Virus record (IMG/VR): IMGVR_UViG_3300032268_000986
Location: 248,001 to 312,000 of that record
Length of the DNA: 64,000 bases
Direction: 5' to 3' (one strand)
The first letter of the stretch is position 1. Each line of letters starts with the position of its first letter. The notes beneath the pieces were generated by a model that was not told the DNA's origin, searched no databases, and was given only the letters and a program-made list of their open reading frames with translations. A program made the translations under genes and the position numbers. Positions 18,904 to 57,861 of this stretch are shown here, piece after piece.

Positions 18904-18932
18904 AGTTTAACACAAAATTGTCAGTGTGTCAA
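18904..18932 (-). promoter_or_regulatory. sigma70-type promoter TTGACA-N17-TAAACT
   Basis: TTGACA cactgacaattttgtgt TAAACT. Confidence 0.7.
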
Positions 18933-20215
18933 CCGCGAACTTGGTAATATGATTCTTGGTCAGATTCGGACAACAGATCCCACAACCTTGAATTGTAATC
19001 TTTCATTTCAATTCGAGTACGGTTGTCAAAATCTGCTGCCATGGTGAGATATTCATTCCACAAACGGTTATTGTCCGGACTATCACCCAAGCAAAATGCA
19101 TGCAGTCCTTCGATAAAAGTTCTAAATGTGTTCCATCCTGGATTGTCTGACGCCTGTGCAATTTGCAATGCACGATTGCATCTTTGGGCTAGTTCAAGTC
19201 GACATCGTTTTGGCATGACTTCCACGGCTGCATATTCGGGCCAGTGCAAATACATGATGCTAAAGTCTGGTTGTTGGTTGTGAGTTTTACCCCATTGATC
19301 CCAGTATTCAGCAATGCTGTCAATGTAAAACACATTACTCACGCTGATAACCAAATTGATGTTGAAATCAAATTGACCCGGATTGGCCTTTTTCAGATCC
19401 AGAGCTTGTTGTACAGTGCGTTCTATTCTTTCAAAACGTGCTGGCCAACGCACATAGTGATAGTTTTCCCCAACACTGTCAATGCTGAAGTTCAAGAACA
19501 CTCGACGAAATTTAGGAATAGCATCCACAAACATTTGATTGATACTGGTGCCATTGGTCGTGGCACTGAGGATCACTCGTTGTGAAAAGTCTTCGCCTAG
19601 ACTGTCCAAGAACTCCATTAGTCGATCCAGTCCAGGCTGTATCATGGATTCTCCGCCAGTCAAATTGATTTCAACAAATCGGTACGTGTTCAACACATCC
19701 ACTAGATACTGTTTAACAGTTGACCATATCACAGGATCATCGGTGATGTCCTGAACAAAATGATCCAGTGCTGGCTGTTTTAATACATCGGCTAGTAGGC
19801 TGCTGAATTCTGGTTGGCAACTTCGGCAAGCAAGATTACAAAGATTACTGAATTTGATAGTGACTCTGTTGGAGTCAGTTTGAGGAGAAAATTCTAAATT
19901 ACTGCTGAGTGTATTAACTGAATCTCGCATGCGCTCTGACACACTGTTGTGCTGTTCGCTGTGAACACATACATGACACTGACTGTTGGTTTTTTGATCC
20001 AGTACATCTTGCTTGATCTCTTGAAACAATTCTGAGAAAGGGCGACCAAATTCCAAATCATTTTCGCGCCAATTGCAACAGGGAATTGCTCGCATGCCAC
20101 GACTGCCTTGCAGTAAGAAAAGATTCTGAAATGGCTTTGCGCAGGCGCTGGGATTCTGCTTGAGCCAAACTATTTTTTGGTCGTATAAGGATGCGGGGTC
20201 GTTGTTGATTGCCAT
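18929..20215 (-). CDS. radical SAM enzyme with N-terminal twitch/SPASM-like Cys cluster
   Basis: C.KPF...PCC and C..C at N-terminus; CNLACRSC; TGGE; TTNGT; SIDSVG..Y.YVRW. Confidence 0.88.
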   Translation of the reverse strand: MAINNDPASLYDQKIVWLKQNPSACAKPFQNLFLLQGSRGMRAIPCCNWRENDLEFGRPFSELFQEIKQDVLDQKTNSQCHVCVHSEQHNSVSERMRDSVNTLSSNLEFSPQTDSNRVTIKFSNLCNLACRSCQPEFSSLLADVLKQPALDHFVQDITDDPVIWSTVKQYLVDVLNTYRFVEINLTGGESMIQPGLDRLMEFLDSLGEDFSQRVILSATTNGTSINQMFVDAIPKFRRVFLNFSIDSVGENYHYVRWPARFERIERTVQQALDLKKANPGQFDFNINLVISVSNVFYIDSIAEYWDQWGKTHNQQPDFSIMYLHWPEYAAVEVMPKRCRLELAQRCNRALQIAQASDNPGWNTFRTFIEGLHAFCLGDSPDNNRLWNEYLTMAADFDNRTRIEMKDYNSRLWDLLSESDQESYYQVRG

Positions 20216-20230
20216 GCCATGATTTATGTG

Positions 20231-20593
20231 TTAACCGGGACTGCGGTCTTTTTTCATGGCCGATTTGGCAGCTGTGGCCACAATGTCTTGTGCTTTGTTA
20301 ACTGGCATTTCTGTAGGAGCTGGTTCGCCCGAAGACTTAAATGTGATTGTGGTTGCACCAGGTTCCATGGGATTCAGCACCTGACTCAAGGGAGGTTGTC
20401 CCACTAGATCAGCCACGTTGTCCTGGCTGACATCTATGTCCAGGCTCTGTGCTAGATTGATAAAAGCGGCAACACTGATTTGTTTTTTGGCGCCGGTATC
20501 TTCGGCACGCCCATCAAGAAACTGCACCAGGCCCAACAATTGCTCAGGATCAGGTGTGGCCCCTGGAAAGTCTGCAACTTCAAATATTTTCAT
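20231..20593 (-). CDS. hypothetical late/virion protein (MKIFE...)
   Basis: Within late cluster; coupled to upstream gene. Confidence 0.7.
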   Translation of the reverse strand: MKIFEVADFPGATPDPEQLLGLVQFLDGRAEDTGAKKQISVAAFINLAQSLDIDVSQDNVADLVGQPPLSQVLNPMEPGATTITFKSSGEPAPTEMPVNKAQDIVATAAKSAMKKDRSPG

Positions 20594-21513
20594 CAGCGAC
20601 GAGCGCGACCTAGGCCTGCGCCACCTGCAGGTTCTTCAGCGTCCATGTCTGCGCCAGCATCGGCAGCAGCAGCGTCAAGATCATCCATGCCAGGTTCAGC
20701 ACCGGCTTCGGCACCAGCAACACCGGCAGCAGCCATGTCACCGGCAGCAGCGTCAACACCAGCGGCAGCAGCCGCCATGTCACCAGCCATGGCACCTGCA
20801 GGTGCTTGCCCAGTAACTACGCCTAGAGCAGCATCAAGTTGTTGCTTGGCACCTTGAATATTTTGCAACATTCCAGTGAGAGCCGCAGTGGCGTCAGAGT
20901 TGAATTGTGCTGCTTGATCAACACCAATTTGGTTCTTGATCGAGTCGACTAGGGCAGGCAGTTCTTTGAACTGTAATTCACTGACATCTTCCAGCATGCC
21001 TTGCATTTTGTCCACCATGTCTTGAGCAGCCAAGACAACTTGAGCTTGTTGAACTTCACTTTCTTTCAGCATGCGGTATGCATTGCGCAAACGACTTTCA
21101 GCTTTCATGAGAGCAGCACCGGCTACCATTTTTTGTTCATCAGGATTCAGTGTTTGGCCAGCAGCTGATTTTTTAAGAGCAGCAGCCAATTTGGGGTCTT
21201 TGACCTTGGCCACGGCCTGTGCAGGATCTGTTTGCTGTGCTTGTTGTCCAGGTGGGATTGGCAGGTCTTCTGATAACCTAGTTATCAATGCTTGTTCCAT
21301 CATGACCAATTGCAGATATTGAGGATTTTGTTCGCTGGTGTGGCGAGCACTGCTCTTGCGAGCTTCGCCAAGAATACCACGTACCTTGGTCAACATGGCA
21401 CGAGTTTGACCAGTGGTGAGACGGTCAAACTTGATGTTGTTACCAAAGTAACTTTCAAATACTTTAGCTATTTGCTTTGCTGGCTTGGGAGCCGAGAGTT
21501 CTTGCAGTTTCAT
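20593..21513 (-). CDS. putative head-internal/scaffold-like protein (MKLQE...), Ala-rich acidic tail
   Basis: GAGG RBS, TAAATA upstream, helical with several (L/M)xE sites. Confidence 0.6.
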   Translation of the reverse strand: MKLQELSAPKPAKQIAKVFESYFGNNIKFDRLTTGQTRAMLTKVRGILGEARKSSARHTSEQNPQYLQLVMMEQALITRLSEDLPIPPGQQAQQTDPAQAVAKVKDPKLAAALKKSAAGQTLNPDEQKMVAGAALMKAESRLRNAYRMLKESEVQQAQVVLAAQDMVDKMQGMLEDVSELQFKELPALVDSIKNQIGVDQAAQFNSDATAALTGMLQNIQGAKQQLDAALGVVTGQAPAGAMAGDMAAAAAGVDAAAGDMAAAGVAGAEAGAEPGMDDLDAAAADAGADMDAEEPAGGAGLGRARR

Positions 21514-21961
21514 TATTGAATCCTCTAATTTGCAGGTATTTAGCCTGATTTATACATTTTTCCAATTCAGTATTTACATAACGTAGTCGCTGAATCTTGG
21601 GCTCTAGCTTGGTTGTCACTGTTTCTTTAAACTCAGTGTCACGGCTGCGATCACGCAGAGTCATGCGACAGTGCAGGTCATTGACCAATCCTTGACGTCG
21701 CTGATCCAATTGTTGTATTTCTCGAGCTAGATTGTATTTTTTAAACTTGTCAGCTGTACACCAACTCATTGCAGTGCGTTGATTACTGAATTTGCCATGA
21801 TCTTGATCTGGTGTAGAAACTGTGACAGATTCACGAGTTTGATGTATTACATAAACACCAAATGCCACTACAGTACCGTTGCCATTGTCAACCACCATGT
21901 GCTGTATGTTTCGACGCAGTTCACGGTCAGCAAATCGTTCTAGCTTTTCTGTTGGGGTCAT
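21464..21961 (-). CDS. hypothetical protein (165 aa)
   Basis: ORF coupled by ATGA overlap. Confidence 0.7.
   Translation of the reverse strand: MTPTEKLERFADRELRRNIQHMVVDNGNGTVVAFGVYVIHQTRESVTVSTPDQDHGKFSNQRTAMSWCTADKFKKYNLAREIQQLDQRRQGLVNDLHCRMTLRDRSRDTEFKETVTTKLEPKIQRLRYVNTELEKCINQAKYLQIRGFNNETARTLGSQASKANS
21537..21542 (-). promoter_or_regulatory. TAAATA late-promoter-like motif
   Basis: 23 nt upstream of the 20593..21513 start. Confidence 0.5.
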
Positions 21962-22221
21962 TTCAAAACATATTGTTGCAGCATCCAGGCCACGGCAGCA
22001 AGCAAACTACCAATGATAGCTACTCCCCAGCCAATGATCTGATCATTGCGTTTGCTGGACATTGAGTCTATTTTTGTGCCAATGCCGTCGAGATTTTCTT
22101 TGACTTCGTTTACTGAGAACTCCACAACTCCCAGTTTGTGCTCCAGCATTTTATAACGTTCGGCGCACAGCTCAACATGAGCCTCCAAACTGTGTTTTTC
22201 AATTTCTGTGGTTTCAGACAT
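21958..22221 (-). CDS. small coiled-coil protein with C-terminal transmembrane helix
   Basis: SLEAHVELCAERY coiled coil; IIGWGVAIIGSLLAAVAWML. Confidence 0.7.
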   Translation of the reverse strand: MSETTEIEKHSLEAHVELCAERYKMLEHKLGVVEFSVNEVKENLDGIGTKIDSMSSKRNDQIIGWGVAIIGSLLAAVAWMLQQYVLK

Positions 22222-22657
22222 GAGAATTCTCCATTGCTGTATTTACCAATTCAAACCAAATGTTTTGTGTTTGTCCCTGGATAATCAAGCAAGGGTCAAT
22301 GCCGTATTCTTCATCTAGATTGATGATCATGGGCACACGGTCACAATCATGTTTGAGACCAGCCAAGGGATCATCACTGTCTGACAATCCGTAAACACCT
22401 TCAGATTCTGTGATAAAAGTAAATTCCCAGGTTCCGGCGTCACACACAGGATTGGATAACTCAAACGGTTGTGTTCTCAAACCAATGATTTGCAATAGTG
22501 TTTCCCAGTTGCGTTGTTGATTGCGACTCTTGTTCCAGTCATGTTGATTGCGCACCCACTGTCCAGCATGATCTTGAAACGGCATGGCTGTGGCTTTGAA
22601 ATGTCCAGTGACACCGGTGCGGCTGCAATCAAAAAGGGTACGACACAATATTTTCAT
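22214..22657 (-). CDS. hypothetical late protein (147 aa)
   Basis: TAAATA 8 nt upstream of ATG. Confidence 0.7.
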   Translation of the reverse strand: MKILCRTLFDCSRTGVTGHFKATAMPFQDHAGQWVRNQHDWNKSRNQQRNWETLLQIIGLRTQPFELSNPVCDAGTWEFTFITESEGVYGLSDSDDPLAGLKHDCDRVPMIINLDEEYGIDPCLIIQGQTQNIWFELVNTAMENSHV

Positions 22658-22665
22658 TCTGCCAG

Positions 22666-22671
22666 TATTTA
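22666..22671 (-). promoter_or_regulatory. TAAATA late-promoter-like motif, 8 nt before ATG
   Basis: TAAATA ctggcaga ATG. Confidence 0.5.
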
Positions 22672-22677
22672 ACGGTC

Positions 22678-22706
22678 AAAGAAAAGCCCTGGAATATTCC
22701 AGGGCT
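22678..22706 (-). terminator. Rho-independent terminator
   Basis: Perfect palindrome AGCCCTGGAATATTCCAGGGCT followed by TTTTCTTT on the minus strand. Confidence 0.85.
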
Positions 22707-22724
22707 GTTCGGTACTAGCGCGGA

Positions 22725-23123
22725 TTAAACGTTAGTGAAAGTAGCTGAGCCAGCAACGTTGGCAGTTGGGATACCAATAGCAGCGTTGGCTGTTTGAGCA
22801 GCAGCAACTAGAGTAGCTGTGGTGTATGCGCCTGTTGGGAACAGAGCGATATTCAACACAGTAGGAGCACTGGGAGTAACTTGATACATTGCCACAGTAG
22901 CAGTTTGTTGAACTGCTTGGATAACGTTGGCGATATAGCCGTTAACACCACCTTGAGCAATCAGAGTAGCGTTGGCGGTCAAGCTGAAAAATTCCAGCTT
23001 TGGACCAGCTGGTTGTACTGGACCGTTGGCAGCAATGTTGCTGGTTGGAGCCAAGGGACCGTTTTGTACGTCCAATGCAAATACTGGTTGTGCATCACCA
23101 TTAACACGAGTAAAATAAGCCAT
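22725..23123 (-). CDS. putative abundant virion protein (capsid decoration-like, 132 aa)
   Basis: Own TAAATA motif, AAAGGAAA RBS, strong terminator, Ala/Thr/Val-rich composition. Confidence 0.55.
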   Translation of the reverse strand: MAYFTRVNGDAQPVFALDVQNGPLAPTSNIAANGPVQPAGPKLEFFSLTANATLIAQGGVNGYIANVIQAVQQTATVAMYQVTPSAPTVLNIALFPTGAYTTATLVAAAQTANAAIGIPTANVAGSATFTNV

Positions 23124-23166
23124 GATAAAATTTCCTTTAAGTTTATAGGCGTTTAAGCCCTACACT

Positions 23167-23172
23167 TATTTA
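23167..23172 (-). promoter_or_regulatory. TAAATA late-promoter-like motif
   Basis: Intergenic, upstream of 22725..23123. Confidence 0.55.
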
Positions 23173-23193
23173 GTCATTTGGTAAAAATCATGC

Positions 23194-25119
23194 CTATTGA
23201 GGGTTGTTTCGGGCACGATTTCTAGCTGTGAAATCAAAGCGGTTCACAGCCTTGGCATAGCCGCTGGGGGTGGCCATGACCCAACCTTCATTGCCCGGAC
23301 TCTGTCGATCCAGCTGTTGTAGCACATCCATTTTGAGATCATGCAACAACAAGAACAGTGTAAACGCCGCTGCCATGCCTTCGGTGTTGGAACTGGGGCT
23401 CTTGAGATATTCAATAATATTGGCGAATTTTCTAGGGCTGACCTTGCTCTGCAGCCACTTGCCAAACTCGCCCAGGAGATTTTCAAAGTGTCCAGTTCCA
23501 ATTCTGTAGTTGATATAGTCCACACACAACTTGGCCAAGTCAGTGATCTGCTGTGATCGTAATTCTGCAGGATTAAACAAGGTGTCAATTGCAGCACCTT
23601 GAGTGCTCAACAGTGATTTGATTTCTTTGATCAACGGTTTGTCGGGCGTGATTTCATTGCCGTATATGGGTTCAATCAACAACAGGCCTGGAACATCCGC
23701 AAACTTCACACCACTGAGTGGTTGTCGAGCATCACCTTGATCTGCATACATGCTGTGCATGGCAATGCCCACTGTGCTGGCTCCAATGCGCTGACCCAAG
23801 GAACTTTGAGCTGGAATTCTGTACTCAACAGTGTTGGGTTGGAACACATAGTTGCCCGACACTTCGGGTGGGGTGTCCATGTACAACAGGTCGCCTTTGG
23901 CATAGCCCCGGAAGTTGGCAGGAGTTGCTGCTTCCAGCATGGGCCACAGTGTGGCATACAGCTGAATCAATTCCCGACGATCACCTGATCTCATGTTCAT
24001 GAATTGTGCCAGTTGATCTACGCTGGTGGCAAGTCCGTCATAGCCCTTGGCTTCAAATCCTGATCCGTCAGTGAGCACAAACTCGCCTGTGCTGGGTTTG
24101 CGCCCAAATATGATAGCAGGCTTGCCGTCCCACTTCACTGTGGTGGTGCCGCCGGGGTTGGCAGCCGCTGCATCAATGATGGACAGAGCTTCGCGCACAC
24201 CCTGTGACCCTTTACGGAACACCAAATCTTCCAAGTGTTCAATGCCCTTGGCTCTGCCGCCTACACCGGCAGCTTCTGCTTCGTACAAACGATAGGGATC
24301 AGCAGAAACCGGAGCTTCGACTATGGCCTGCATGCCTTGATTCACAATGCGGTCACGCAAGCGGGCCAGGAAATTCACATCATTCTCTTTGACCACTTCA
24401 GGTTCGCTGGCACCCTCTCTCTGAAGGTATTCACGAAAATCTGCCAGCTTGGCATCACGCTGGGGATCAGCCGACAGAGCATTGTAAATGGTTTCTACGT
24501 TTTTTAAACTTTTACGGTCATGCCCTTTGCCCAACAGCACTGATGCCACATAGTCGGGATCCAGACCATGGTTGACCAGTTGATTGGTTGCACGACTAAA
24601 CATGCCATTGGCGCCGACCTTGAGTCCCAGACTCTTGGCCACGGAACTTACAAGTACATTGCGCATGACACCCTTGTAGGCAGAATCTGTGCCACCGCCA
24701 TAGTAGTATGTGCCCCAGTCCACGTTGGGGAAAAACATAAAGTCTGTTTGCACAAAGCCTTGATCAGGGTCACCGTTGATGGGAGTTTTGAAATGTACTT
24801 CGCCGGCTTTTTTCACCCACTCACGCGGATCCTGTCCCTGACTGGTGACAAACTGTGTTAGCTTGGCGGCAACGGCTTCCTTGGAGGCTTCGTTGGTGTC
24901 AATGGCAATGTCAAGATCGCCCGACGATTCTTTTTTGCCGGTGCTGCCCAACCAGCGGCTGGGATATCCTGTGTCAGTGTCCTCTGGCCCCGACAGGTCC
25001 ATGTTCAACACTGATTCCAACCACTGAATGGTTCCAGGAATGTCGGCCTGGTTGATTCTCTGGGTCAGTGGTAGGCCCATTTTGTCTTTGAATACGTTGC
25101 CACCTTCAAATACGTTCAT
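23194..25119 (-). CDS. two-domain protein: Pol beta/Pol X-like nucleotidyltransferase fused to ligase-like KxDG domain (DUF6267-like)
   Basis: LGSTGKKESSGDLD (G58,S59,D68,D70) plus VQTD126; second domain IEHLED, TVK329WDG, KGDLLY. Confidence 0.7.
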   Translation of the reverse strand: MNVFEGGNVFKDKMGLPLTQRINQADIPGTIQWLESVLNMDLSGPEDTDTGYPSRWLGSTGKKESSGDLDIAIDTNEASKEAVAAKLTQFVTSQGQDPREWVKKAGEVHFKTPINGDPDQGFVQTDFMFFPNVDWGTYYYGGGTDSAYKGVMRNVLVSSVAKSLGLKVGANGMFSRATNQLVNHGLDPDYVASVLLGKGHDRKSLKNVETIYNALSADPQRDAKLADFREYLQREGASEPEVVKENDVNFLARLRDRIVNQGMQAIVEAPVSADPYRLYEAEAAGVGGRAKGIEHLEDLVFRKGSQGVREALSIIDAAAANPGGTTTVKWDGKPAIIFGRKPSTGEFVLTDGSGFEAKGYDGLATSVDQLAQFMNMRSGDRRELIQLYATLWPMLEAATPANFRGYAKGDLLYMDTPPEVSGNYVFQPNTVEYRIPAQSSLGQRIGASTVGIAMHSMYADQGDARQPLSGVKFADVPGLLLIEPIYGNEITPDKPLIKEIKSLLSTQGAAIDTLFNPAELRSQQITDLAKLCVDYINYRIGTGHFENLLGEFGKWLQSKVSPRKFANIIEYLKSPSSNTEGMAAAFTLFLLLHDLKMDVLQQLDRQSPGNEGWVMATPSGYAKAVNRFDFTARNRARNNPQ

Positions 25120-26202: not shown

Positions 26203-26219
26203 TATATCAGCCTTTTGAT

Positions 26220-26249: not shown

Positions 26250-26270
26250 TCTGCAACACAAGGATCTCAA

Positions 26271-27203
26271 ATGACCAGCGCAATCAACCCCAACAACATC
26301 GACGGTGCTTATCCCATTGCCGGGCAGCCCAACAACACCCAAGGCATGCGGGACAACTTCACCGCCACAAAAACCAATTTTCAGTATGCAGCCGACGAAA
26401 TCACTGACTTGCAGAGCAAGGTTGTGGTTAAATCTGCTCTAACCGGCGGTACTATAGACAACAACATGAATGACAACCTCATTTATGCTGTCAAACTCAA
26501 TGATGTCAGTTACACTTATTTGCAAAATACAGCCACTGCGGGCACAGTCACAATAGACTATTCTGCAGGACAATATCAATTCCTTACAACTACAGGCAGC
26601 GTTTCCCTGAGTTTTGCCAACTGGCCCGTGGCCGGTGATACTGGCAGCGTGGACATTGCTGTGAACATCACCAACACTGCTTACACATTGACCCTGCCCT
26701 CGGCAGTCAGCCTGGGCACCGCCGGAGTTCAAGGCTACAGCGCAAATGTGATCACATTTGCTGCCACTGGCACCTATCAGTTCCGTTTCTCCACAGCCGA
26801 CAGCGGCACCACCATAACCATATTTGATTTGAATCGTCCTTTGTTAGCAGCCGAAGGGCAAACAATTGGATATCAGGGAGCAGCTGGTACAGGCGGCACA
26901 GTAACACAAGCAACCAACAAAGCCACAGGTGTAACGTTAAACAAACCTGTTGGACAAATTACCCTAAACAATGCATCGCTAGCGGCTGCCACTACAGTGA
27001 ATTTTACCTTGACCAATTCCTACATTGGCAACACTGACCTGCTGATAATCAATCAAACCAGCACAGCCAACGCAGGCGGTTACTATTTTAATGCAATATG
27101 TAATGCGGGCAATGCACAAGTGTCTGTGCGCAATATCATGGCAGCATCAGCAAGTGATGCTGTGGTGGTACGTTATGCTGTGGTCAAGGGCGAAATAGCT
27201 TAA
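26271..27203 (+). CDS. putative tail/fibre structural protein
   Basis: N-terminal NN.QG.RDNF..TK.N..YA..EI..LQ; C-terminal GG.VTQAT.K.TGVTLNK.VGQITLNNA.LAA module; Thr/Asn/Gly-rich. Confidence 0.65.
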   Translation: MTSAINPNNIDGAYPIAGQPNNTQGMRDNFTATKTNFQYAADEITDLQSKVVVKSALTGGTIDNNMNDNLIYAVKLNDVSYTYLQNTATAGTVTIDYSAGQYQFLTTTGSVSLSFANWPVAGDTGSVDIAVNITNTAYTLTLPSAVSLGTAGVQGYSANVITFAATGTYQFRFSTADSGTTITIFDLNRPLLAAEGQTIGYQGAAGTGGTVTQATNKATGVTLNKPVGQITLNNASLAAATTVNFTLTNSYIGNTDLLIINQTSTANAGGYYFNAICNAGNAQVSVRNIMAASASDAVVVRYAVVKGEIA

Positions 27204-30351: not shown

Positions 30352-30353
30352 CG

Positions 30354-34121: not shown

Positions 34122-34561
34122 TTGACATCTCGTCCCAATTGTCGATCGTGATCGTCCAGGTCTTTGGTAGAAACCACAGTCATCATGACATCCAGTTCGT
34201 CATCTCGATAAGTGGGATACAACTCCTGTAGACGCTTTCGTTTGGCACCGGCTCCGGCTTCTTTTTTCTTGGGCGCAACCCAGTTGTGCTTCATTGCCCC
34301 CAAGCCCGGGCTCACGGCAGTGGCACACAACCACTGCAATTTGGGGTGCCGGCCAATTGTGAAGAAGTGTTTGTTCAAGTAGTGGTTACAACTTTGCACA
34401 TAGTACTCTTGCAACTCCTGAGCACCGTCCACACAACTACCCCAACGGATCATGAGAAAAGTACTGAACTTCTTGAGCTCTTCTGTGGTAAGACTGTTGT
34501 AGAACTCTCGGTTCTTGACGTCCAGTTGACGCATCTCGTTGTGTATTGATAGCTTATCCAT
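34118..34561 (-). CDS. probable clamp-loader small subunit (T4 gp62-like); start probably MDKLS at 34561
   Basis: Size, position in the replication module, F.MIRW.S...N..LN.H...HPKLQW...W.APKK pattern. Confidence 0.55.
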   Translation of the reverse strand: MDKLSIHNEMRQLDVKNREFYNSLTTEELKKFSTFLMIRWGSCVDGAQELQEYYVQSCNHYLNKHFFTIGRHPKLQWLCATAVSPGLGAMKHNWVAPKKKEAGAGAKRKRLQELYPTYRDDELDVMMTVVSTKDLDDHDRQLGRDVK

Positions 34562-35612
34562 ACTTGAAAATTTTCCTATAGACCTGTTGTTGGACTGGCA
34601 AATGTTGAAACCATCCCTCACCCCGGGTGTGATCCATCATGAGCTGGCGTGCTGTGAACTTCCACCAGGCCTGAGTATTGTCCACTGTGCGCAGTACATC
34701 AATAGCTCGATCAATGTTGACATGCCGATGTGGTGCTGTTTCCAACTTGGCAATCAAATTGTCTCGAAATTCCCAGGGAATCAAGCCCAGTCCCTCTGCA
34801 CCATCAGGATTGGCCAATACTGGTTGGAACGCATGTTCCGTGACCTGTTGCTGTGAAAGATAGTCAAACAATTGATCTATCCACCAAACATTAATGGCAC
34901 TGATCACTGGTGCATAGGATAATTGTACATAAGATTGTGATTTACACCAAGCAATATTTTCTTCAATTTGACTCCATTTGGTGCCACTGCGAACTATTTC
35001 GGCAATCTCTCCCACGGCATCAATGCTGGCATTGACATTGATATACTTGAACTTGGACCAGTAGTCTTTCACGTGTTTGTTCTTGTAGCCCAACACAGTC
35101 ATATTGGTGCTGTACATCACACGAGGTTGCACCCGAGCTGCAATCAATTTTTCCAACAGCTGATAGTGCTGTGGATTCAGCAGTGGTTCACCGCCGGCAA
35201 AATACACCTGTTGACAATGACTCAAGTCAATGTCGCCCAATTCAACTTCTTCGTGTAAATGAATCACCTGTTGACCCAGTTCACTGGCCCAGCTGGTGCT
35301 GAATCCTGGACCACAACTGCGACATTTCAAATTGCAGAGATTGTTGTTTCTAAAATCCAAGAAGTGAACCTGCAAGTTGGTCAAGTCAGTGGGATAGTGC
35401 TGAAACATCTTACGCCAGCCTTCTCGCTCAGGTGGGCATGAGTTCATGCACTCCTGAGGAATTTCACCTCGCAAAAAAGCACCGCCTACTACGTCACGAA
35501 CCTGTTCAGGACTGTCAAAGTGATCGCCGCCCCAGCTGCAACAGGGTGTGAACTTGCCGCCAGGCATGTAGGTGACTGCGGTCCATGGAGCCTTGCAATA
35601 GATTTCACTCAT
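34554..35612 (-). CDS. radical SAM enzyme with N-terminal twitch-like Cys cluster
   Basis: CKAPW...PCC, CNLKCRSC, AGGEPL, YSTN.T, ASIDAVG..AEIVRSG. Confidence 0.9.
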   Translation of the reverse strand: MSEIYCKAPWTAVTYMPGGKFTPCCSWGGDHFDSPEQVRDVVGGAFLRGEIPQECMNSCPPEREGWRKMFQHYPTDLTNLQVHFLDFRNNNLCNLKCRSCGPGFSTSWASELGQQVIHLHEEVELGDIDLSHCQQVYFAGGEPLLNPQHYQLLEKLIAARVQPRVMYSTNMTVLGYKNKHVKDYWSKFKYINVNASIDAVGEIAEIVRSGTKWSQIEENIAWCKSQSYVQLSYAPVISAINVWWIDQLFDYLSQQQVTEHAFQPVLANPDGAEGLGLIPWEFRDNLIAKLETAPHRHVNIDRAIDVLRTVDNTQAWWKFTARQLMMDHTRGEGWFQHLPVQQQVYRKIFKYG

Positions 35613-48960: not shown

Positions 48961-50015
48961 TATTCTTCCTCAACGTCAACAACAGGTGTGGCATCCTTTT
49001 GATTGCCAAAATCTTTCATCACAGTGTCAAGACAGCCGTCAGTATTGGCTTCCCATGCCTTGCGAAACTTCTTGATGATCTCGCCATCGCTTGTGGTAAA
49101 CACTAGACTGTTGCCTTCGCGTTTGAGCAGGCCTTTTTTCTCAATCAAGTCCACAAGACCTGAGTAAGGGCTCATGCCTGTTTCATAAGGAATCTTGACT
49201 TGCACTCCCTCGAACGGCTTGGCATAGCGTGTTTTCATTACTTTACAGCCAGCACGAATACCAGTTACATCTGAAATCTTGTTGCCGTCTTCGTCCTCTT
49301 TGAGTTTCATCTTCTTCATGGCCACCACAATTGAGCTGGCGTAAATGAAACCTTGACCACCTGAAATCTTGTCGTCTGGATCAAACATGTCTTGACTGGC
49401 GTATGTGTGATTGGTACAAACCAGGCCCACGTTGTAACTACCAAACATGTTGACACAGTTACGCACCAAGGCGGTAAGAGCTTTGGGCTTGCGACCTAGG
49501 TCACCTTTCATTTCGCCTGCATCAAATTGATTCACATCAGTGGGTGTCAGCAACATGCCCAGGCTGTCAATTACAAACATGACCTTGGGTCGCTCGGCAG
49601 GATCAAGAGCTTTGTAGTCGCTCATGAATGTAGAGATAGTTTTAGCTACATCGTCAATCATGGCCATTGACAATTTGAGTAACTTGCTGTCACTGGTATC
49701 AACTCCCAGGGCCTTGAGCCAGTCTTCGTCCAAGGCATTTTCGCTGTCAATCAACACTACAAAGATGCCTTGCTGTTGTGCATGTTTGATAATGTTGCCA
49801 CTACAGATGTAACTTTTACCTGCGCCCGAGTCACCGGCAAACACCGTGACCTTGCCCAAGGGGATACCTCGATCAAAGTCTCCTGAGATCAAGTAGTTCA
49901 AAGCATAGTTGCCTGTGGAGATCCAGTCTGTGGGATCATTGAATCCAATCGACAATCCGTCGATACTTTTTGTAATTTCCTTGCGGAATTTTGATACGTC
50001 AAATGGTTTAGCCAT
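48960..50015 (-). CDS. uvsX: RecA/UvsX recombinase
   Basis: STGNYALN, GDSGAGKS, IDSEN, VIDSLG, TNHTY, SGG.G..YASS. Confidence 0.95.
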   Translation of the reverse strand: MAKPFDVSKFRKEITKSIDGLSIGFNDPTDWISTGNYALNYLISGDFDRGIPLGKVTVFAGDSGAGKSYICSGNIIKHAQQQGIFVVLIDSENALDEDWLKALGVDTSDSKLLKLSMAMIDDVAKTISTFMSDYKALDPAERPKVMFVIDSLGMLLTPTDVNQFDAGEMKGDLGRKPKALTALVRNCVNMFGSYNVGLVCTNHTYASQDMFDPDDKISGGQGFIYASSIVVAMKKMKLKEDEDGNKISDVTGIRAGCKVMKTRYAKPFEGVQVKIPYETGMSPYSGLVDLIEKKGLLKREGNSLVFTTSDGEIIKKFRKAWEANTDGCLDTVMKDFGNQKDATPVVDVEEE

Positions 50016-51606
50016 GGTATTTTCCTTTGTAAATGATATCTGCTATTTCTGGATGTGTCTGATTAAATTTTTGATCTCTTATATTGTCTAATTTTAGCAT
50101 GAATTTTGATAGTTCGTCAATTAAATCTGGTGAATATTTGTTCTGTTTGAGTAAGGCAATGATAGGAAATACATTGTGTTTTATTAACTTGTCATGATCA
50201 ATTTGAGATAATTTGTCAATGACTTGAGTTGTTAATTCCGTATTCATTGCTGTTATGCTTAAAAATTTTGGGTGTTCTAATAAATTAAAATTTAATTTGT
50301 TAAATTTTTTTGTATCTACCCAGGTTATTAACTGATCAAGATAATAAACATTTTGAACATTAACTGTGGTAAAAATACTAAGGATCATGTTTGGTAGTTT
50401 GTTTTCTAAGAATTTATCTAAGTTAACATTGACCAAATCCCATTTCCCCCCGCGCTCTAATTCAAACCGTGTACCTATGTTATCTATGCTAAATGCAATG
50501 TCAACTTGTCGGAACAACTTCCATTTTTCAAACAAATGTGCTGGGTACACAGACCCGTTTGAATTGTAATGTAGTCTAATTTTGTGTGCCAGGTCATGCT
50601 CTATTAGATAATCTAAAAATGTCTCTTGTTGCTTGATGAGAAACGGCTCGCCACCATAAAAATCAATGTTAACCAGCTGATTTCCCAACGTGTTAAACAT
50701 TTTCCAAATTTGATCATTTTTGACCCACTGTCCTTTTCGATTGAGATTTTTGAGATCAATAATAGAGTCAAAGTGTCGTGCCTGTTCTTCTGCTATTTTT
50801 GAACTAGCGTCTGAATTGCATATTCTGCATGCAAAATTACAAAGATTTCCTAGTTTTAAATCTAGACTAACTAAATTTTCAAGTTGATCTTGCTCTATGT
50901 CTAAACATTGCGCATCAATCCCAAGACAATCACTGAACCACTGTCGATTTGATTGCCCTTTATGTTGTTCTTTCATCCAGCAGCTCGAACATCCGGCAGG
51001 ACGATCCCCGTCGAGAAATTGTGTTCTTAACCTTGTTAAATAGTCACTGTGGTAGACTTCTTCAATACTATTAGTATTGATATTGTAGGGAACATTGTTG
51101 GAATCCGTTATTGATTCTTTATACACACAACAAGGTCTAAATTCGCCTTGTGACGAAATTTCTAAATGTGCCCATGGACTAAAACAAAATGTGTCAGGCA
51201 AGGTAATTGCAGGATTCTTAACAACCTCAGGTGCGACGTCACTAAATTTTATGTCCAGTGTTGAAAAAATACAATCATCTGTTGAATAGTTGCGTCTAAC
51301 TAATTCAAGATGATCTTGATCAATGTCAGAACCAGAACTACAAATTAAAATAAAAAAGTTAGATATATCTAACAGCGTTGCGCTTTTTTGTATGTGTATT
51401 AAAGTTTCAACTGATATCAAATTTCTACTGTACAGAACTATTCGACTATGATCACTGTATTCTGGTTGGTACCATTGTTTAAATAATTTATACAGTGTTT
51501 TTCGAGGTTGACCAAGTAATTGATCTAGGTCGATTACACCAACTATTTGATAGTTGTAATGTTGTTCTAAATACTGTTTTAGGTCAGTTGAGGGTATCGG
51601 TGTCAT
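50008..51606 (-). CDS. radical SAM enzyme with twitch-like Cys cluster and extra N-terminal domain; AT-rich gene
   Basis: CFSPW.HL.I...G..RPCC, C.SCW, CNFACRIC, YGGEPF, YNSNG, FSIDNIG. Confidence 0.9.
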   Translation of the reverse strand: MTPIPSTDLKQYLEQHYNYQIVGVIDLDQLLGQPRKTLYKLFKQWYQPEYSDHSRIVLYSRNLISVETLIHIQKSATLLDISNFFILICSSGSDIDQDHLELVRRNYSTDDCIFSTLDIKFSDVAPEVVKNPAITLPDTFCFSPWAHLEISSQGEFRPCCVYKESITDSNNVPYNINTNSIEEVYHSDYLTRLRTQFLDGDRPAGCSSCWMKEQHKGQSNRQWFSDCLGIDAQCLDIEQDQLENLVSLDLKLGNLCNFACRICNSDASSKIAEEQARHFDSIIDLKNLNRKGQWVKNDQIWKMFNTLGNQLVNIDFYGGEPFLIKQQETFLDYLIEHDLAHKIRLHYNSNGSVYPAHLFEKWKLFRQVDIAFSIDNIGTRFELERGGKWDLVNVNLDKFLENKLPNMILSIFTTVNVQNVYYLDQLITWVDTKKFNKLNFNLLEHPKFLSITAMNTELTTQVIDKLSQIDHDKLIKHNVFPIIALLKQNKYSPDLIDELSKFMLKLDNIRDQKFNQTHPEIADIIYKGKYHG

Positions 51607-51627
51607 TTGAGTTTAATCAGAGAAATT

Positions 51628-51652
51628 ACAAGGGGCCTTAAAGGCCCCTTGT
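51628..51652 (-). terminator. stem-loop after gp32 (probable terminator)
   Basis: ACAAGGGGCCT-TAA-AGGCCCCTTGT 11-bp stem; U-tract short. Confidence 0.65.
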
Positions 51653-51665
51653 GTCTACTATCTGC

Positions 51666-52667: not shown

Positions 52668-52685
52668 AGTATGTTTCCTTTATAA

Positions 52686-52736
52686 GTTGCCTATGTGTGT
52701 TGCCTATCTAAATTAATTAGATCAATTGTTGCCTGT
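52686..52736 (-). repeat. three AGGCAAC direct repeats in the gp32 5-prime leader
   Basis: Plus-strand GTTGCCT at 52686, 52699 and 52728. Confidence 0.8.
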
Positions 52737-52767
52737 GCCACAAAAGAAAAAGCGCAAACACAGTAGT

Positions 52768-52796
52768 AGTATATGCGCTTTTGTCCGCTGTGTCAA
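52768..52796 (-). promoter_or_regulatory. sigma70-type promoter TTGACA-N17-TATACT for gp32, overlapped by an AAAAGCGCA/TGCGCTTTT inverted repeat (52748..52782)
   Basis: TTGACA cagcggacaaaagcgca TATACT. Confidence 0.8.
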
Positions 52797-52807
52797 GTTT
52801 ATTTATA

Positions 52808-54568
52808 TCATTTGAGCAAAGCCAGTGATTTTATTCTTGCCAGTTCGTCTGACTCGTAGTAGCTGCCTGTGATTGCGGCATTGTAGTTCATGGGGTCGTC
52901 GTTGCCTTCGTCCATGACCGGAGCCATGCCGCCGGCCACTGTGCCCATTTCATACATGCCTCCACATTCGGCCAGGCCATGTTCGGGACAATAAGCACCT
53001 TCGGCAGTCATGTTGCAGGCGCTGCCTTCTGTAGTGACTGGCATGGCCATGGGAGAGATGAGATTTTCAGCTAAGCCGCGATCTTGAGCAAATCGATCTG
53101 ATATCCATTCATATGGATCACCATCACGTGCTTTCTTTGTGCCATATGGCATGTCATCAAAATAATAGTCATACAGGGCATGGTACAAATCATCACTCAT
53201 GTCCCCGGTGGCTTCAAAGTCACGCACCTCTTTGCCAAATCTGTTACAGATGTGATCCAAGGTGCTGCCAGTAGAATCAGTCAGCACACCTTCGTTTAGG
53301 TCATCGTACTCGCCTTCTTGCTCTTCGGGTGGTGTGTTGCCCTGTGGAACGTCAACACCTAGTTCATTCAACCGATCCATGATGGCAGGATTTTCCCAGA
53401 TGCTGACGTTGGGATCTTGTTCAGCTTGGTCGCCAATGAGATCAAACAGCTGATCATCGCCCACAAGGTCATACAACTGCTCAGTGGCATTGGTACCATC
53501 GGGGCCGGCTTCCAGCGGCTGACTCATCAGTTGTTTCAAACGATTCTGTTGTTCTGGAGTTTCGGGCAACGCCCAGGTTCCCTCGGCTAGATTATTGATC
53601 CAGTTTTCAAAGATTTGTGCTTCTTTCATGTCTTGTCCTTGTTGTTGTATTCTTGCCAGCAAGGGCAAGGCCTCTTCGATACGTGCATCCAGTGTTTGTT
53701 CCACAAACAAACTCTTGATGTCTTCAACCAAAGATTCATGATCGGCCACTTGCATGGGCGACCATGATTCAAAATATGCTGAGTAACCACGATGGGTGCC
53801 CATGTGTTTGAGATTTTCTCGCAGTTGTTGATAATAGGTATTGGCTTGCTCAATGACTGATTGTTTCACGCTTTCGGCCACGGCATCATGGCTGGCTCGA
53901 CGAAAACGACTCAAGACCTTGAGTTCAGTCACTGTTTCTGTGATATGACTGCCGCGAACATCGTAGGGTTTGCCGCCCTGACGCACATGCTCTAACATGG
54001 CTCTGCCGCCGGCCATGTTGACAAACGGCAACTTGAATCGCTCTTGATCAGCTGTTTCAATAAACAAACTTTCAACGTAGCGGAATCTTGCATCGTTTTC
54101 GCCCAGCACACGATTGTGACGGATCATGAGTCTGGCTTCAGTGGGTTCGCCTGCGTAGCTGACCTTGCGTGTGCCATAGTAGCCTTCAAACAGGCCTTCT
54201 TGTATGGCAGCAATACCAGCTTGTACTCGTTTGAGTTTGTTGAGATTTGTCAGTGTGCCGGTCCAGCGATTGCGGTTGGCCAACTGCATGAGTTGCTGTT
54301 GAAAATCAAAGAACTCATTGCGGTCCTGGGCATCTTCAATGGTTTTGCCCAGATTGTCACCGTACATGATCATCATTTCGTTGTCATTGCCCAGTACAAT
54401 CACCATGGTGCCATAGTTTTTACCCGAGCCAGATACATAGTCAAAGCTGAATGTCTTGGCATCTTCGGTGTCGCAGGGACGGCCGTCTCGACCCAGAGTT
54501 TCAGGATGAAAGTCCCGAGTATCCAGTAAATCACTTAGTTGTTGTTCAAAATTGAGGGTTTGTGCCAT
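52808..54568 (-). CDS. large putative head-internal/late protein (586 aa) with multiple xxE-G/S sites
   Basis: TAAATA 7 nt before ATG; LFE-G, LAE-G, LNE-G, MDE-G, YYE-S sites; C-terminal ELARIKSLA. Confidence 0.55.
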   Translation of the reverse strand: MAQTLNFEQQLSDLLDTRDFHPETLGRDGRPCDTEDAKTFSFDYVSGSGKNYGTMVIVLGNDNEMMIMYGDNLGKTIEDAQDRNEFFDFQQQLMQLANRNRWTGTLTNLNKLKRVQAGIAAIQEGLFEGYYGTRKVSYAGEPTEARLMIRHNRVLGENDARFRYVESLFIETADQERFKLPFVNMAGGRAMLEHVRQGGKPYDVRGSHITETVTELKVLSRFRRASHDAVAESVKQSVIEQANTYYQQLRENLKHMGTHRGYSAYFESWSPMQVADHESLVEDIKSLFVEQTLDARIEEALPLLARIQQQGQDMKEAQIFENWINNLAEGTWALPETPEQQNRLKQLMSQPLEAGPDGTNATEQLYDLVGDDQLFDLIGDQAEQDPNVSIWENPAIMDRLNELGVDVPQGNTPPEEQEGEYDDLNEGVLTDSTGSTLDHICNRFGKEVRDFEATGDMSDDLYHALYDYYFDDMPYGTKKARDGDPYEWISDRFAQDRGLAENLISPMAMPVTTEGSACNMTAEGAYCPEHGLAECGGMYEMGTVAGGMAPVMDEGNDDPMNYNAAITGSYYESDELARIKSLALLK

Positions 54569-54575
54569 GGTAGTA

Positions 54576-54581
54576 TATTTA
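54576..54581 (-). promoter_or_regulatory. TAAATA late-promoter-like motif, 7 nt before ATG
   Basis: TAAATA tactacc ATG. Confidence 0.55.
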
Positions 54582-56168
54582 GCGCATTATGGAAATAAAG
54601 GGCATGGGTTCAACTATGACATCGCCATGATCTTTGAGGTGACTGTCCAATTCAGAGTGATAGGTTTGCAACAACATCAACATGCGCACTGCCAACAAAC
54701 TGCTCATCACAAGATCATCAGTTTCCCCGGGTTTGGCAGAGTAACTGGTGCCAGCTGCCACAAAGGTCTTGAGCTCAGAAATCAAGGGCTTGCTGTACAG
54801 TTTCATGCGGCCCGATTCCACAAGGATTTTGAACTTGTTGCAGGCTGTGATCTTGGCCTTGTGTGTGGTGTTGAAACCTTTGCGGAATCTGCGACCTGTG
54901 GTGCCTGTCACAGAGTTGTCGCTGAGAAAGTACCCAGGAATATTTTCTTCACCGTATTCTGCAATAGAGATCAAGGCTGCTTCTCCCAGGGTGTTGTTTT
55001 CCACCGAGTAATACACGCTCTTGTCGTTCTTGGTCACTGCTTTTATTTCCTTGATGATGTCCACCAGTATGCGAACTTGACTGGGCACATCAGTTTTGTT
55101 GTGGCGCCACTCGGCTACTTGTTCTGTGGTGTCGGCCTCAAAAACCTGTATAGCTGCTGGATCACCTCCGGTGCCCAGGCTGGGATCCAAGGCAACAATG
55201 TACATTTTACCTGGGTTGATTGGCTTGTACCAGCGCACTTGACCGGTACGGTGTATGGGGTCAACTCCTTCTATCTCCAGCAGTTTGATAGGGGATATCA
55301 AAGTTTCATCGTTGATAACAAACTCACAGTCCATTTCTCTGCGGAAACGTTCTTCACCCAGCTGAGCTCGTTGTTCATTGGCCCAGGCATCATCACGATC
55401 TGGGTGTTCTCTCCAATAGGCGCGGTACGCACGGAAGCCATTGATGCCTAGACCGTCGGGTCTGGGATTGCCGTACTCGTCTTCAATCTTGTTGGCACCT
55501 TTCCAGATATAAGCAAATTGATCTTCGTCTGAGTTGGGAGTTGATGTGATAATGGCTTTACCACCAGTGCTCAATGTGGGAGTGATGGAAGTCCAAAACT
55601 CCTTGGCAATTGTGGGTCGCACAAACGCAAACTCATCAAGATACAGCAAGGTGATACTCATACCACGGCCGGTGTTTTCAGTTGTGGTCTGACTTACAAT
55701 ACGGCTACCGTTGTCAAACTCTAGGCTTCCTTTGTTGTAGCTGGTGGCGCCGGCACGAATGTGATTGGGGCACAACTCATAAGCATATCTTATGCGTTGC
55801 ATGATTTCCTGGGCGCCTAGATACTTGTGTGCAGCAATCAAGATTGTGCTGTCGGGAATAAACATGGCATACCACAGCAGGTATCCAGCTGCTGATGTTG
55901 ATTTGCCTGTTTGTCGAGGCATGAGACTGATACTAAATCTATTGGTGTGATAGTTGTCAATCAGCTTTTTTTGATAGTCATAAGCATGGTACAACATCTT
56001 GCCACGTGTGGGATGCTGAATGTGAAAAAAGTTGTCCATGAAGTATGCCGGGCCCGTGACAGGGTCGGCGCACAGTGCAAATTCTTGTAGTTCTTGATTG
56101 GTGTAGGTCTCTCGTCTGTGTGGCGATTTGACCAGTACAGTGTCCAGTGTTGGTTTCATTCCAATCAT
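54579..56168 (-). CDS. terL: terminase large subunit (T4 gp17-like)
   Basis: PRQTGKST, RGMSITLLYLDEFAFV, IITSTPN, ALDPSLG.G.D, DDLVM. Confidence 0.96.
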   Translation of the reverse strand: MIGMKPTLDTVLVKSPHRRETYTNQELQEFALCADPVTGPAYFMDNFFHIQHPTRGKMLYHAYDYQKKLIDNYHTNRFSISLMPRQTGKSTSAAGYLLWYAMFIPDSTILIAAHKYLGAQEIMQRIRYAYELCPNHIRAGATSYNKGSLEFDNGSRIVSQTTTENTGRGMSITLLYLDEFAFVRPTIAKEFWTSITPTLSTGGKAIITSTPNSDEDQFAYIWKGANKIEDEYGNPRPDGLGINGFRAYRAYWREHPDRDDAWANEQRAQLGEERFRREMDCEFVINDETLISPIKLLEIEGVDPIHRTGQVRWYKPINPGKMYIVALDPSLGTGGDPAAIQVFEADTTEQVAEWRHNKTDVPSQVRILVDIIKEIKAVTKNDKSVYYSVENNTLGEAALISIAEYGEENIPGYFLSDNSVTGTTGRRFRKGFNTTHKAKITACNKFKILVESGRMKLYSKPLISELKTFVAAGTSYSAKPGETDDLVMSSLLAVRMLMLLQTYHSELDSHLKDHGDVIVEPMPFISIMR

Positions 56169-56749
56169 GTGATATTGGGCTTTAATAATGTGTACGAGGT
56201 CAGTCTAAATGTGCCCACAGGCACAGGGTTGAGCATGCCATGAAACAAGCCAGTGGTTTCAGCATTGTTTAAAGGGTTGGTCATTATGTATCCTGTGTTG
56301 GCCTGAGATTCAAACTGTTTTCTCACTTGCTGGCCTTGACTGTCATGATAAAAACAGGTGCCCTGTTCAGAATGGCCTATCCAATACATCTGCATGGCGC
56401 CCGGCAACGCACCGTCGGTATGTATAGGGCAATCAAACCCTTCATGATCCAACCAAAACACAGTATGTCCATGATGATGACTGAGTAAAGGCATGTTGAT
56501 CATGGTGCTGATACGAAACCATATCTGTTGTTGATTGGTTGTCCATTGGTCTCCCCAGGACAGATCATGAAGTTCAATTCTGCGTCGAGGCCAGGTTTCT
56601 TGGCAAGGTTGAGTACTGTGTGGGACATTCAACCAGTCCGTGGCAAGTATTTGTTGCAAAAGATCTGAGGGCACCAGGTCAGTTACCTGGAACAGATTTG
56701 GAACACTGTCAACTGCGGTTATTTGCATAGGTGTGATAACTCTGGCCAT
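56165..56749 (-). CDS. 2OG-Fe(II) oxygenase-like protein
   Basis: HTD...FHG...R facial triad and 2OG-binding Arg pattern. Confidence 0.7.
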   Translation of the reverse strand: MARVITPMQITAVDSVPNLFQVTDLVPSDLLQQILATDWLNVPHSTQPCQETWPRRRIELHDLSWGDQWTTNQQQIWFRISTMINMPLLSHHHGHTVFWLDHEGFDCPIHTDGALPGAMQMYWIGHSEQGTCFYHDSQGQQVRKQFESQANTGYIMTNPLNNAETTGLFHGMLNPVPVGTFRLTSYTLLKPNIT

Positions 56750-57861
56750 AGCTTTTCAAACTCACCTGCTTTGTCAGGATGGAACACAGTTTCGTTGTCC
56801 ACTATGTGTTGTTTGAATTGTTTTTCAATTCCAGGTCGGGCCTGTTTTATGTCACGATACATATTTAATGAGTTATCAAAAAATGCACGTTCAGCCGGAG
56901 TGGAGATCCCTAGATTGTAAAAACGTTCTATCTCAGAAATTGCTGCGGCTGCAACTTCTGGACCATGCAGAAATGGATCAAGATACTCTGGTTGAAACAG
57001 GTTCTGCCACAACACTGTGGTACCAGTTTGCTCGGCAAATTCGCGCAGTTCACAAATGCGTGTGGCATTGTAGATGTTGTACACTGCATGTATGCCACCC
57101 CACTGTCCTTGCGTTTTCATCAAGTCCTTGATCAGTTGCAAGTTGTGTTGAATTGTGCTCCAGGTGGCACCATGTCGCACATATTCAAGGCGATCACCGG
57201 TGTTATCAAAGCTCATGCTCCAGCCCACTTTGTTTCTAGTTGATAACTTTTGAAATATCTTGTTTGATTCTAGATCAACATTCAAGTTTGTAATCAGTGT
57301 GACAATTGCGTCCTTGGGTATGACATCCAACAAACGATTGTTTTCTGGCAACAACAAGGGCTCGCCGCCTACCAGCGCAACTTCATGTATGTGTTCGTAG
57401 TGCTGTTCAATGAAGTCACACACTGAATCGTAGTAGGGTCTTGCACCACTCTTGAATGGAATACCTTTGATGCCGGCCCATTTTGAGCTGCATGATTCAC
57501 CGCAGTAGTTACAACTCAGGTTACAAGTGGTATTCCAACGCACATCCACAATCACAGGATAGTGATATTTGTCTCCTGCTGTGGCATAATCAAAGTTGGG
57601 ATTTACATTGTTGTGCCAGGCCCGTTCAGAATCAGCACCAAATCGTTCTGCTCGCACACAATTGCTGCAATACTCATGTGGGATTCCTTGTGCAAGACTA
57701 TTGCGTATCTTGCCCATGAGATCAGAGTTTAAAATCTCAACAATGCTCTGTGAGTTCAAGTTGCCCAGCATGTTGGGATTGCCGGCACAGCAGGTTTTTA
57801 CATCGCCCCTGGGATTGATATGTAGGCCGCGCCAGGGAGCGGCACAATAGAAATTTGTCAT
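56719..57861 (-). CDS. radical SAM enzyme with N-terminal twitch-like Cys cluster
   Basis: CAAPW.GLHI.P.G.V.TCC, CSNC, CNLSCNYC, VGGEPL, ITN, SFDN.G.R.EYVRHG. Confidence 0.92.
   Translation of the reverse strand: MTNFYCAAPWRGLHINPRGDVKTCCAGNPNMLGNLNSQSIVEILNSDLMGKIRNSLAQGIPHEYCSNCVRAERFGADSERAWHNNVNPNFDYATAGDKYHYPVIVDVRWNTTCNLSCNYCGESCSSKWAGIKGIPFKSGARPYYDSVCDFIEQHYEHIHEVALVGGEPLLLPENNRLLDVIPKDAIVTLITNLNVDLESNKIFQKLSTRNKVGWSMSFDNTGDRLEYVRHGATWSTIQHNLQLIKDLMKTQGQWGGIHAVYNIYNATRICELREFAEQTGTTVLWQNLFQPEYLDPFLHGPEVAAAAISEIERFYNLGISTPAERAFFDNSLNMYRDIKQARPGIEKQFKQHIVDNETVFHPDKAGEFEKLWPELSHLCK

Follow-up and report, generated by a model that had tools for sequence, protein, structure and literature searches.

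A multicopy family of radical SAM proteins with an N-terminal twitch domain in a freshwater jumbo phage and its linkage to glycosyltransferase-like genes

The 64,000-nt stretch of DNA analysed in this work (positions 248,001 to 312,000 of IMG/VR virus record IMGVR_UViG_3300032268_000986, hereafter the window) carries four genes encoding radical S-adenosylmethionine (SAM) proteins of a single family, N_Twi_rSAM, in which a cysteine-rich twitch domain lies ahead of the radical SAM core. The four are true paralogs and belong to a set of ten such genes in the genome of a freshwater T4-related jumbo phage. The company that these genes keep in this genome, in other phages and in bacteria leads us to suggest, with moderate confidence, that the N_Twi_rSAM copies may be radical tailoring enzymes for the sugars of a phage-made glycan. 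The record that holds the window is 342,865 bp long, with 47% G+C, and is rated 99% complete. In its terminase it shares 52% identity with Pseudomonas phage PA5oct and ~50% with Atu_ph07 and Phosso, and the region around one of the four genes (P0004) has been seen in lake and freshwater metagenomes from 12 studies.

Family membership and domain order

The assignment of the four proteins rests on the NCBIfam model NF033640 (N_Twi_rSAM, "twitch domain-containing radical SAM protein"), which spans 398 positions and has a curated cut-off of 170 bits. All four exceed this cut-off, with scores of 188-314 bits over model positions 2-396, and the cut-off was reached in none of 14 control genomes; their membership of the family is essentially certain. 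The initial annotation of the window, made from the letters alone, had described four paralogous radical SAM open reading frames (ORFs) and had proposed a profile search against N-terminal twitch families, and that search bears the description out in every case. Pfam Radical_SAM (PF04055) is likewise matched by the four proteins, two of which also match the SPASM model on the N-terminal side of the core, and the CxxxCxxC and GGE motifs present in all four are invariant across the ten paralogs of the genome.

SPASM and twitch domains have been described as C-terminal to the radical SAM barrel (PMC9477430). In the proteins studied here the twitch domain stands ahead of the core in 10 out of 10 genome paralogs, and not C-terminally as in twitch enzymes of the BtrN and MoaA type. 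The cysteines upstream of the core follow the pattern C-x(12-20)-G-x4-(C)C, then CxxC (CxxxC in P0002), and number exactly five in P0001, P0002 and P0004, with additional ones in the N-terminal extension of P0003. P0004 reproduces the twitch signature CX9-15GX4C as C6-x12-G19-x4-C24, followed by C65xxC68, and its AlphaFold2 model (mean predicted local distance difference test, pLDDT, 81.7) places a hairpin in this region (strands 12-15 and 20-22), with helices after it.

The closest point of reference is BtrN, a 2-deoxy-scyllo-inosamine dehydrogenase and the founding twitch radical SAM enzyme (PDB 4M7S and 4M7T), in which four twitch cysteines ligate the auxiliary cluster. Profiles of the N-terminal ~100 residues of our proteins match BtrN in its C-terminal twitch domain, at chain residues 166-237 (E = 0.002-0.003), and four of the N-terminal cysteines fall on all four BtrN cysteines of that stretch. 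The similarity is marginal (E ~0.003), the radical SAM cores are not specifically related, the twitch domain comes after the barrel in BtrN and before it here, and proteins of the window type carry an extra helical C-terminal region of ~90 aa. Together with the position of the SPASM matches, the alignment upholds the earlier claim that the auxiliary cysteines lie N-terminal to the SAM domain, and the N-terminal twitch is predicted from these residues to hold one auxiliary [4Fe-4S] cluster. The reversed order is thus real, but it cannot be presented as a new architecture, because NCBIfam already models it: N_Twi_rSAM is a named family of unassigned function, with the same succession of twitch domain, CxxxCxxC core and helical C-terminal region, and our proteins are in no way architecturally different from it. 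No paper on NF033640, or on an N-terminal twitch or SPASM family, was found in the literature searched.

The peptide maturases with SPASM domains (anSME, SkfB, SuiB, PqqE) belong to the same SPASM/twitch subgroup, and it is the Pfam SPASM model that matches the N-terminal domain here. They differ from the window proteins in that the latter have four or five auxiliary cysteines, enough for one cluster and not two, an N-terminal position for the domain, and neither a precursor peptide nor a PqqD-type recognition element (RRE) in their genome. A full SPASM domain has seven or eight cysteines and two clusters, against the five upstream cysteines of P0001, P0002 and P0004.

Copy number, age and selection

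Ten places in the genome score above the NF033640 cut-off, four of them in the window and six outside it. Five of the latter form a plus-strand tandem cluster at 50.3-59.9 kb, in which a 420-aa copy is encoded at genome 54611-55873, and the sixth lies at 226 kb, adjoining a ClpP protease gene that is placed directly upstream of it. The description of dispersed single copies hence holds for the window but not for the genome, half of whose copies are in tandem, as the copies of other phages and of Bacteriovoracaceae usually are. The ten copies occupy ~4% of the 343-kb genome. In three further radical SAM genes the domain order is conventional; SPASM is matched C-terminally in two of these, and one adjoins a GDP-mannose-dehydratase-like short-chain dehydrogenase/reductase (SDR) gene; both domain orders thus coexist in one phage, with a total of 13 radical SAM genes. 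In five other phage records of 275-347 kb, matches over the cut-off number 7, 7, 11, 14 and 16 and are largely in tandem. One match in a related complete 347-kb record (G003:C1:318146-319294) contains an in-frame TAG, which could reflect a decayed gene (pseudogene), an error in the sequence or stop-codon recoding.

Pairwise identity among the ten paralogs is only 17-33%, but all of them retain the invariant Cys, GGE, N, S and R residues. In a FastTree phylogeny of 392 family members, which came from bacterial loci as well as from 79 phage loci and the present genome, they take up ten separate positions, and orthologs 78-87% identical to the cluster copies are found in other phage contigs. Recent duplication within the genome is ruled out by these tree positions and identities, and the phylogeny resolves the ten copies as old, separate subfamilies that are individually conserved. 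The initial view of a family expanded in phages is therefore to be read as the retention of many ancient subfamilies and not as recent multiplication.

The conservation is best documented for P0004. Its metagenomic homologs exceed 2,000, with the best 120 clusters 76-99% identical. Orthologs of 83% and 54% identity occur in two jumbo-phage records, and one of 77% in a 318-kb scaffold that keeps the order nuclease, radical SAM gene, terL. The proportion of nonsynonymous differences (pN) is 0.12-0.17 against the two closest orthologs and 0.33 against the 54% ortholog, synonymous differences (pS) being saturated; P0004 is under strong purifying selection. Among 50,697 isolate phage records, no match was returned by tblastn with P0004 or by megablast with the terL/radical SAM region.

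More distant relatives do occur in isolates. In Vibrio phages K566 and K567, the paralog profile hits a run of at least four ORFs (E values of 1e-31 to 1e-46) that show the same N-terminal C...CC...CxxC arrangement; they are annotated as "radical SAM domain-containing protein", share 22-24% identity with our proteins and, unlike the cluster described here, are not accompanied by an A1-family gene (see below). The K566 cluster (OZ196521.1) lies at 161.5-168.3 kb, with a PagP lipid A acylation gene annotated nearby, and an ORF adjoining it has a DxD-containing stretch that we take to recall GT8 glycosyltransferases. Single copies are present in isolates nt-1, CZ01 and VS2, and Ralstonia phage RsoM2USA also carries a relative.

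Gene neighbourhoods and the substrate of the family

The five-gene tandem cluster is interleaved with two genes of an unannotated family, A1, which probably has a glycosyltransferase-like fold and has nine copies in this genome. On its flanks lie members of three families (c2, c3 and c5), a weak GDSL-like match and a carbamoyltransferase (PF02543). Of two genes for NAD-dependent sugar epimerases/dehydratases, one closes the cluster region and the other abuts a conventional radical SAM gene. The assignment of A1 as a glycosyltransferase (GT-B, GT10-like) is of moderate confidence. A1 has no Pfam match at E values up to 10, no PHROG match, no credible sequence match in the PDB (best E 0.4) and, for the member searched by tblastn, no match in the isolate phage records. 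The c2, c3, c5 and 194-aa ORF families are similarly devoid of Pfam matches and essentially of PHROG matches.

The association recurs beyond this genome. A1-like genes are found in or beside the radical SAM clusters of four other jumbo-phage records, and in 79 IMG/VR loci, which comprise 298 N_Twi ORFs and most commonly five in a locus of ~13 kb, no neighbour is as frequent as A1 (63 ORFs, spread over 43 of the loci, at a mean distance of 1.4 genes). Next in frequency come three families of no assigned function that are also found in the cluster described here; UDP-glucose/GDP-mannose dehydrogenases appear in 13 loci and epimerases/dehydratases in 10. Copies 83-84% identical to the cluster genes, with A1 genes, are also present on two contigs binned as Haliscomenobacter sp. 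MAG EUL_031 (NZ_JBBAKG010000001/3; 183 and 148 kb), where MAG stands for metagenome-assembled genome; their combined length is close to that of this phage, and they look like a mis-binned phage relative, not bacterial DNA, so that they give at most a weak hint of a Saprospiraceae host.

Bacterial homologs, retrieved by scanning genome contigs with a set of four closer sequences, are 30-40% identical. They reach eight tandem copies in Bacteriovoracaceae and are also present in Bdellovibrio, Polyangiaceae, Paenibacillus, several Alphaproteobacteria and Bacteroidota. Around them recur Wzt-type ABC ATPases (9 loci) and GT2 glycosyltransferases (8 loci), along with GDSL-like proteins, DegT aminotransferases, a split transketolase, acyl carrier protein, SDR proteins and a WelO5-like oxygenase. 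On contigs from MAGs of the predatory Bacteriovoracaceae/Halobacteriovoraceae, five to eight N_Twi_rSAM genes stand in tandem, and in one group of four loci, some of these among them, they adjoin a PhoX alkaline phosphatase gene and a 230-aa family.

It is the recurrence of A1 and nucleotide-sugar enzymes in phages, and of Wzt, GT2 and DegT genes in bacteria, that points to sugars as substrates. The initial annotation had guessed at sugars as a common substrate class, and the guess gains support from gene context outside the window, in other phages and in bacteria; the class itself is read from that context, and some bacterial homologs stand in PqqD-containing contexts of RiPP type (see below). 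BtrN acts on a carbohydrate-like substrate, its auxiliary cluster being used in a two-electron oxidation. By analogy, the SAM cluster of the N_Twi_rSAM copies would generate a 5'-deoxyadenosyl radical that removes hydrogen at an unactivated sugar carbon, whether in a nucleotide sugar or in a growing glycan, and the fully Cys-ligated auxiliary cluster might then take or return an electron, the outcome being oxidation, epimerisation, dehydration or decarboxylation. Each paralog could serve a different sugar or position. The putative GT-B (GT10-like) glycosyltransferases encoded alongside, together with the carbamoyltransferase and the SGNH/GDSL-like enzyme, would use the products for the build-up of a phage-specified glycoconjugate. 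Its target might be virion proteins or the host envelope, with DNA as the less likely option.

Several observations weigh against this proposal. No sugar gene adjoins any of the four window copies, which are surrounded by genes for replication, packaging and structure. Fold searches with the P0004 model do not separate sugar-acting from peptide- or nucleotide-acting enzymes. A minority of bacterial homologs have as neighbours either PqqD-domain and HprK-like proteins or PhoX, and N_Twi_rSAM is hence probably not isofunctional. The literature searched holds no biochemical data on any member of the family. Nor does the one lake metatranscriptome run amount to evidence of transcription: it yielded only five short contigs on a 3,283-nt stretch, of which just one touches the radical SAM gene, with 10 mismatches in 67 nt.

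The first alternative is that these proteins are maturases of peptides or proteins, introducing thioethers, C-C cross-links, epimerised residues or formylglycine into structural or other phage proteins. Most characterised SPASM/twitch enzymes are of this kind, the secondary NCBIfam matches of the four proteins are mostly to maturases of peptides that are ribosomally synthesized and then modified post-translationally (RiPPs), and the best Foldseek matches of P0004 include SkfB, SuiB, anSME, CteB and EpeE. One window copy follows a virion structural gene, another is directly upstream of the packaging genes, and the Anderseniella/Hyphomicrobiales branch of homologs is the one that sits beside the PqqD-domain and HprK-like genes. 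We nonetheless consider maturation of peptides or proteins unlikely. The structural matches are limited to the shared radical SAM core (template modelling, TM, scores of 0.33-0.41). The same applies to the likeness to anSME, which amounts to E ~5e-6 when PDB chains are searched with the paralog profile and to a Foldseek TM score of ~0.4; the listed NCBIfam matches of the four proteins include no anSME or AslB model, no search having been aimed at sulfatase genes, and the "AslB" attached to some homologs is an automatic label of the Joint Genome Institute (JGI). PqqD/RRE (PF05402) has no match anywhere in the genome and no recurrent small precursor ORF is seen beside any copy, so that the pairing of recognition element and precursor gene typical of RiPP maturases is missing from this genome, in line with the earlier remark that no precursor peptide is evident next to the window copies. 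Lastly, the genes that recur around the phage copies are glycosyltransferase-like and nucleotide-sugar enzymes, not peptidases or transporters.

The second alternative invokes nucleotides or nucleic acids as substrates, either through chemistry of the viperin, MoaA or QueE type or through DNA hypermodification, with GT-B enzymes glycosylating DNA as in T4. In the fold search with the P0004 model, SuiB, SkfB, PFL-AE, viperin and MoaA all come within 1 Z unit of BlsE, a sugar/nucleoside-acting radical SAM enzyme. Since enzymes acting on peptides and nucleotides score so close to it, the BlsE match shows a common core only; identity to BlsE and DesII is just 14-15%. Fold searches (Foldseek, VIA) returned the generic radical SAM core and were rejected as evidence on the substrate. 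The scores for viperin, MoaA and QueE lie far below their cut-offs and reflect that same core, the Wzt exporters and GT2 enzymes beside the bacterial homologs form a surface-polysaccharide context and, in our judgement, 7-16 divergent paralogs and ~9 putative glycosyltransferases per genome exceed any DNA-modification pathway known to us. A role in nucleotide chemistry is accordingly rated as quite improbable. That the four proteins are housekeeping enzymes of separate families, chance resemblances or decayed duplicates, for which their low pairwise identity might speak, is hardly credible, given that they match one curated family over its full length, that the invariant positions persist in ten copies, that P0004 is under purifying selection and that no housekeeping equivalog model in NCBIfam is above its cut-off for any of them; the possibility raised at the outset that they might fall into unrelated families of this sort is thereby excluded.

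With the tailoring of sugars as the preferred reading, a broader and more tentative proposal can be put forward. A widespread freshwater lineage of jumbo phages, along with many smaller phages, could possibly encode a self-contained radical glycan pathway, in which 7-16 enzymes make different rare sugars that A1, c2, c3 and c5 assemble into a phage-specific glycoconjugate on the virion or the infected cell. As far as we have searched, what is new is the 7-16-fold multiplicity of the family in this lineage, the stability of its ancient subfamilies and how tightly it is linked to an unannotated glycosyltransferase-like family, and a full-text search found no literature linking jumbo phages, radical SAM enzymes and glycosyltransferases. 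If borne out, the proposal would for the first time give N_Twi_rSAM a function and would add a new type of glycosylation system in viruses, extending the virus-encoded glycosylation of giant viruses and some phages to radical-based sugar diversification. It also gives an uncharacterised family a testable hypothesis of function, with Vibrio phages K566/K567 and nt-1 as cultivable carriers.

Window genes, iron-sulphur carriers and other features

The features discussed are listed in Table 1. All four window ORFs are open, and most of the neighbours first named for them were recovered. P0001 has a virion structural gene on one side and, directly downstream, a Cas4-like exonuclease gene on the other. 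P0003 stands between a gp32-like gene for single-stranded DNA-binding protein and a UvsX-like gene, with an 8-nt overlap with the latter, and P0004 has a 194-aa ORF and terL downstream of it. P0002 is downstream of a DNA helicase gene and overlaps the next ORF at its 3' end; the gp62-like neighbour once ascribed to it was not confirmed. This overlapping or abutting of core genes suggests that the window copies are co-expressed with core modules, and does not inform on their substrate. The N-terminal extension of P0003 (~138 aa) and that of a 642-aa cluster copy have no Pfam match.

Table 1. Coordinates and matches of the features described in the text (window, positions 1-64,000 of the analysed stretch; genome, positions of the IMG/VR record).
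Feature	Coordinates	Strand	Matches	Twitch Cys residues	CxxxCxxC residues
N_Twi_rSAM paralog P0001, 428 aa	window 18929..20215	-	NF033640 188.4 bits; Pfam Radical_SAM	25, 46/47, 80, 83 (nt 19967-20143)	126-133 (nt 19817-19840)
N_Twi_rSAM paralog P0002, 352 aa	window 34554..35612	-	NF033640 198.8 bits; Radical_SAM and Fer4_12	6, 24/25, 55, 59, CxxxC variant (nt 35436-35597)	93-100 (nt 35313-35336)
N_Twi_rSAM paralog P0003, 532 aa	window 50008..51606	-	NF033640 314.2 bits over residues 138-524; SPASM 141-210, then Radical_SAM 252-415	141, 159/160, 206, 209 (nt 50980-51186)	256-263 (nt 50818-50841)
N-terminal extension of P0003	window 51193-51606	-			
N_Twi_rSAM paralog P0004, 380 aa	window 56719..57861	-	NF033640 206 bits; SPASM 6-68, then Radical_SAM	6, 24/25, 65, 68 (nt 57658-57846)	113-120 (nt 57502-57525)
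Two tandem A-type Fe-S carrier genes (IscA/ATC-like)	window 11774-12402	-	PF01521 Fe-S_biosyn at genome 259792-260091 (E = 1e-19) and 260109-260399 (E = 3e-15)		
Cas4-like exonuclease gene	window 18127-18888	-			
Five-gene N_Twi_rSAM tandem cluster	genome 50294-59920	+	NF033640		
Carbamoyltransferase gene	genome 61051-62526		PF02543		
Sugar epimerase/dehydratase gene closing the cluster region	genome 70805-71767				
ClpP protease gene	genome 227530-228123	-			
Conventional radical SAM genes (three)	genome 5770-6783; 132625-133563; 148992-150035				
ORF of ~4,790 aa	genome 27414-41786	+			
Paralog of the ~4,790-aa ORF	window 5196-7205				
Member of the 11-member paralog family	window 26271-27203				

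The two A-type iron-sulphur (Fe-S) carrier genes of the window are mutually paralogous and, by analogy, probably supply clusters for the 13 Fe-S-rich radical SAM enzymes of this phage. A comparable co-occurrence of an Fe-S carrier with many radical SAM genes has been reported in a 183-kb T4-like marine environmental viral genome that holds 12 radical SAM genes and Fe-S assembly genes (Nishimura et al. 2017, PMC5332604). That genome also encodes an A-type carrier, ClpP and cas4; here there are 13 radical SAM genes and two carriers, and ClpP and the Cas4-like gene each adjoin one N_Twi_rSAM copy. The two differ in setting and size, the present genome being from freshwater and 343 kb long, and the radical SAM genes are treated in PMC5332604 as clients of the Fe-S system, with no description of the N-terminal twitch family or of its linkage to glycosyltransferases.

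No tRNA or tmRNA genes were found in window positions 1-64,000. The genome also contains a single ORF of ~4,790 aa with four paralogs elsewhere, one of them in the window, and a paralog family with 11 members, which are large and probably structural proteins encoded at 183-201 kb and 324-340 kb, with one member in the window.

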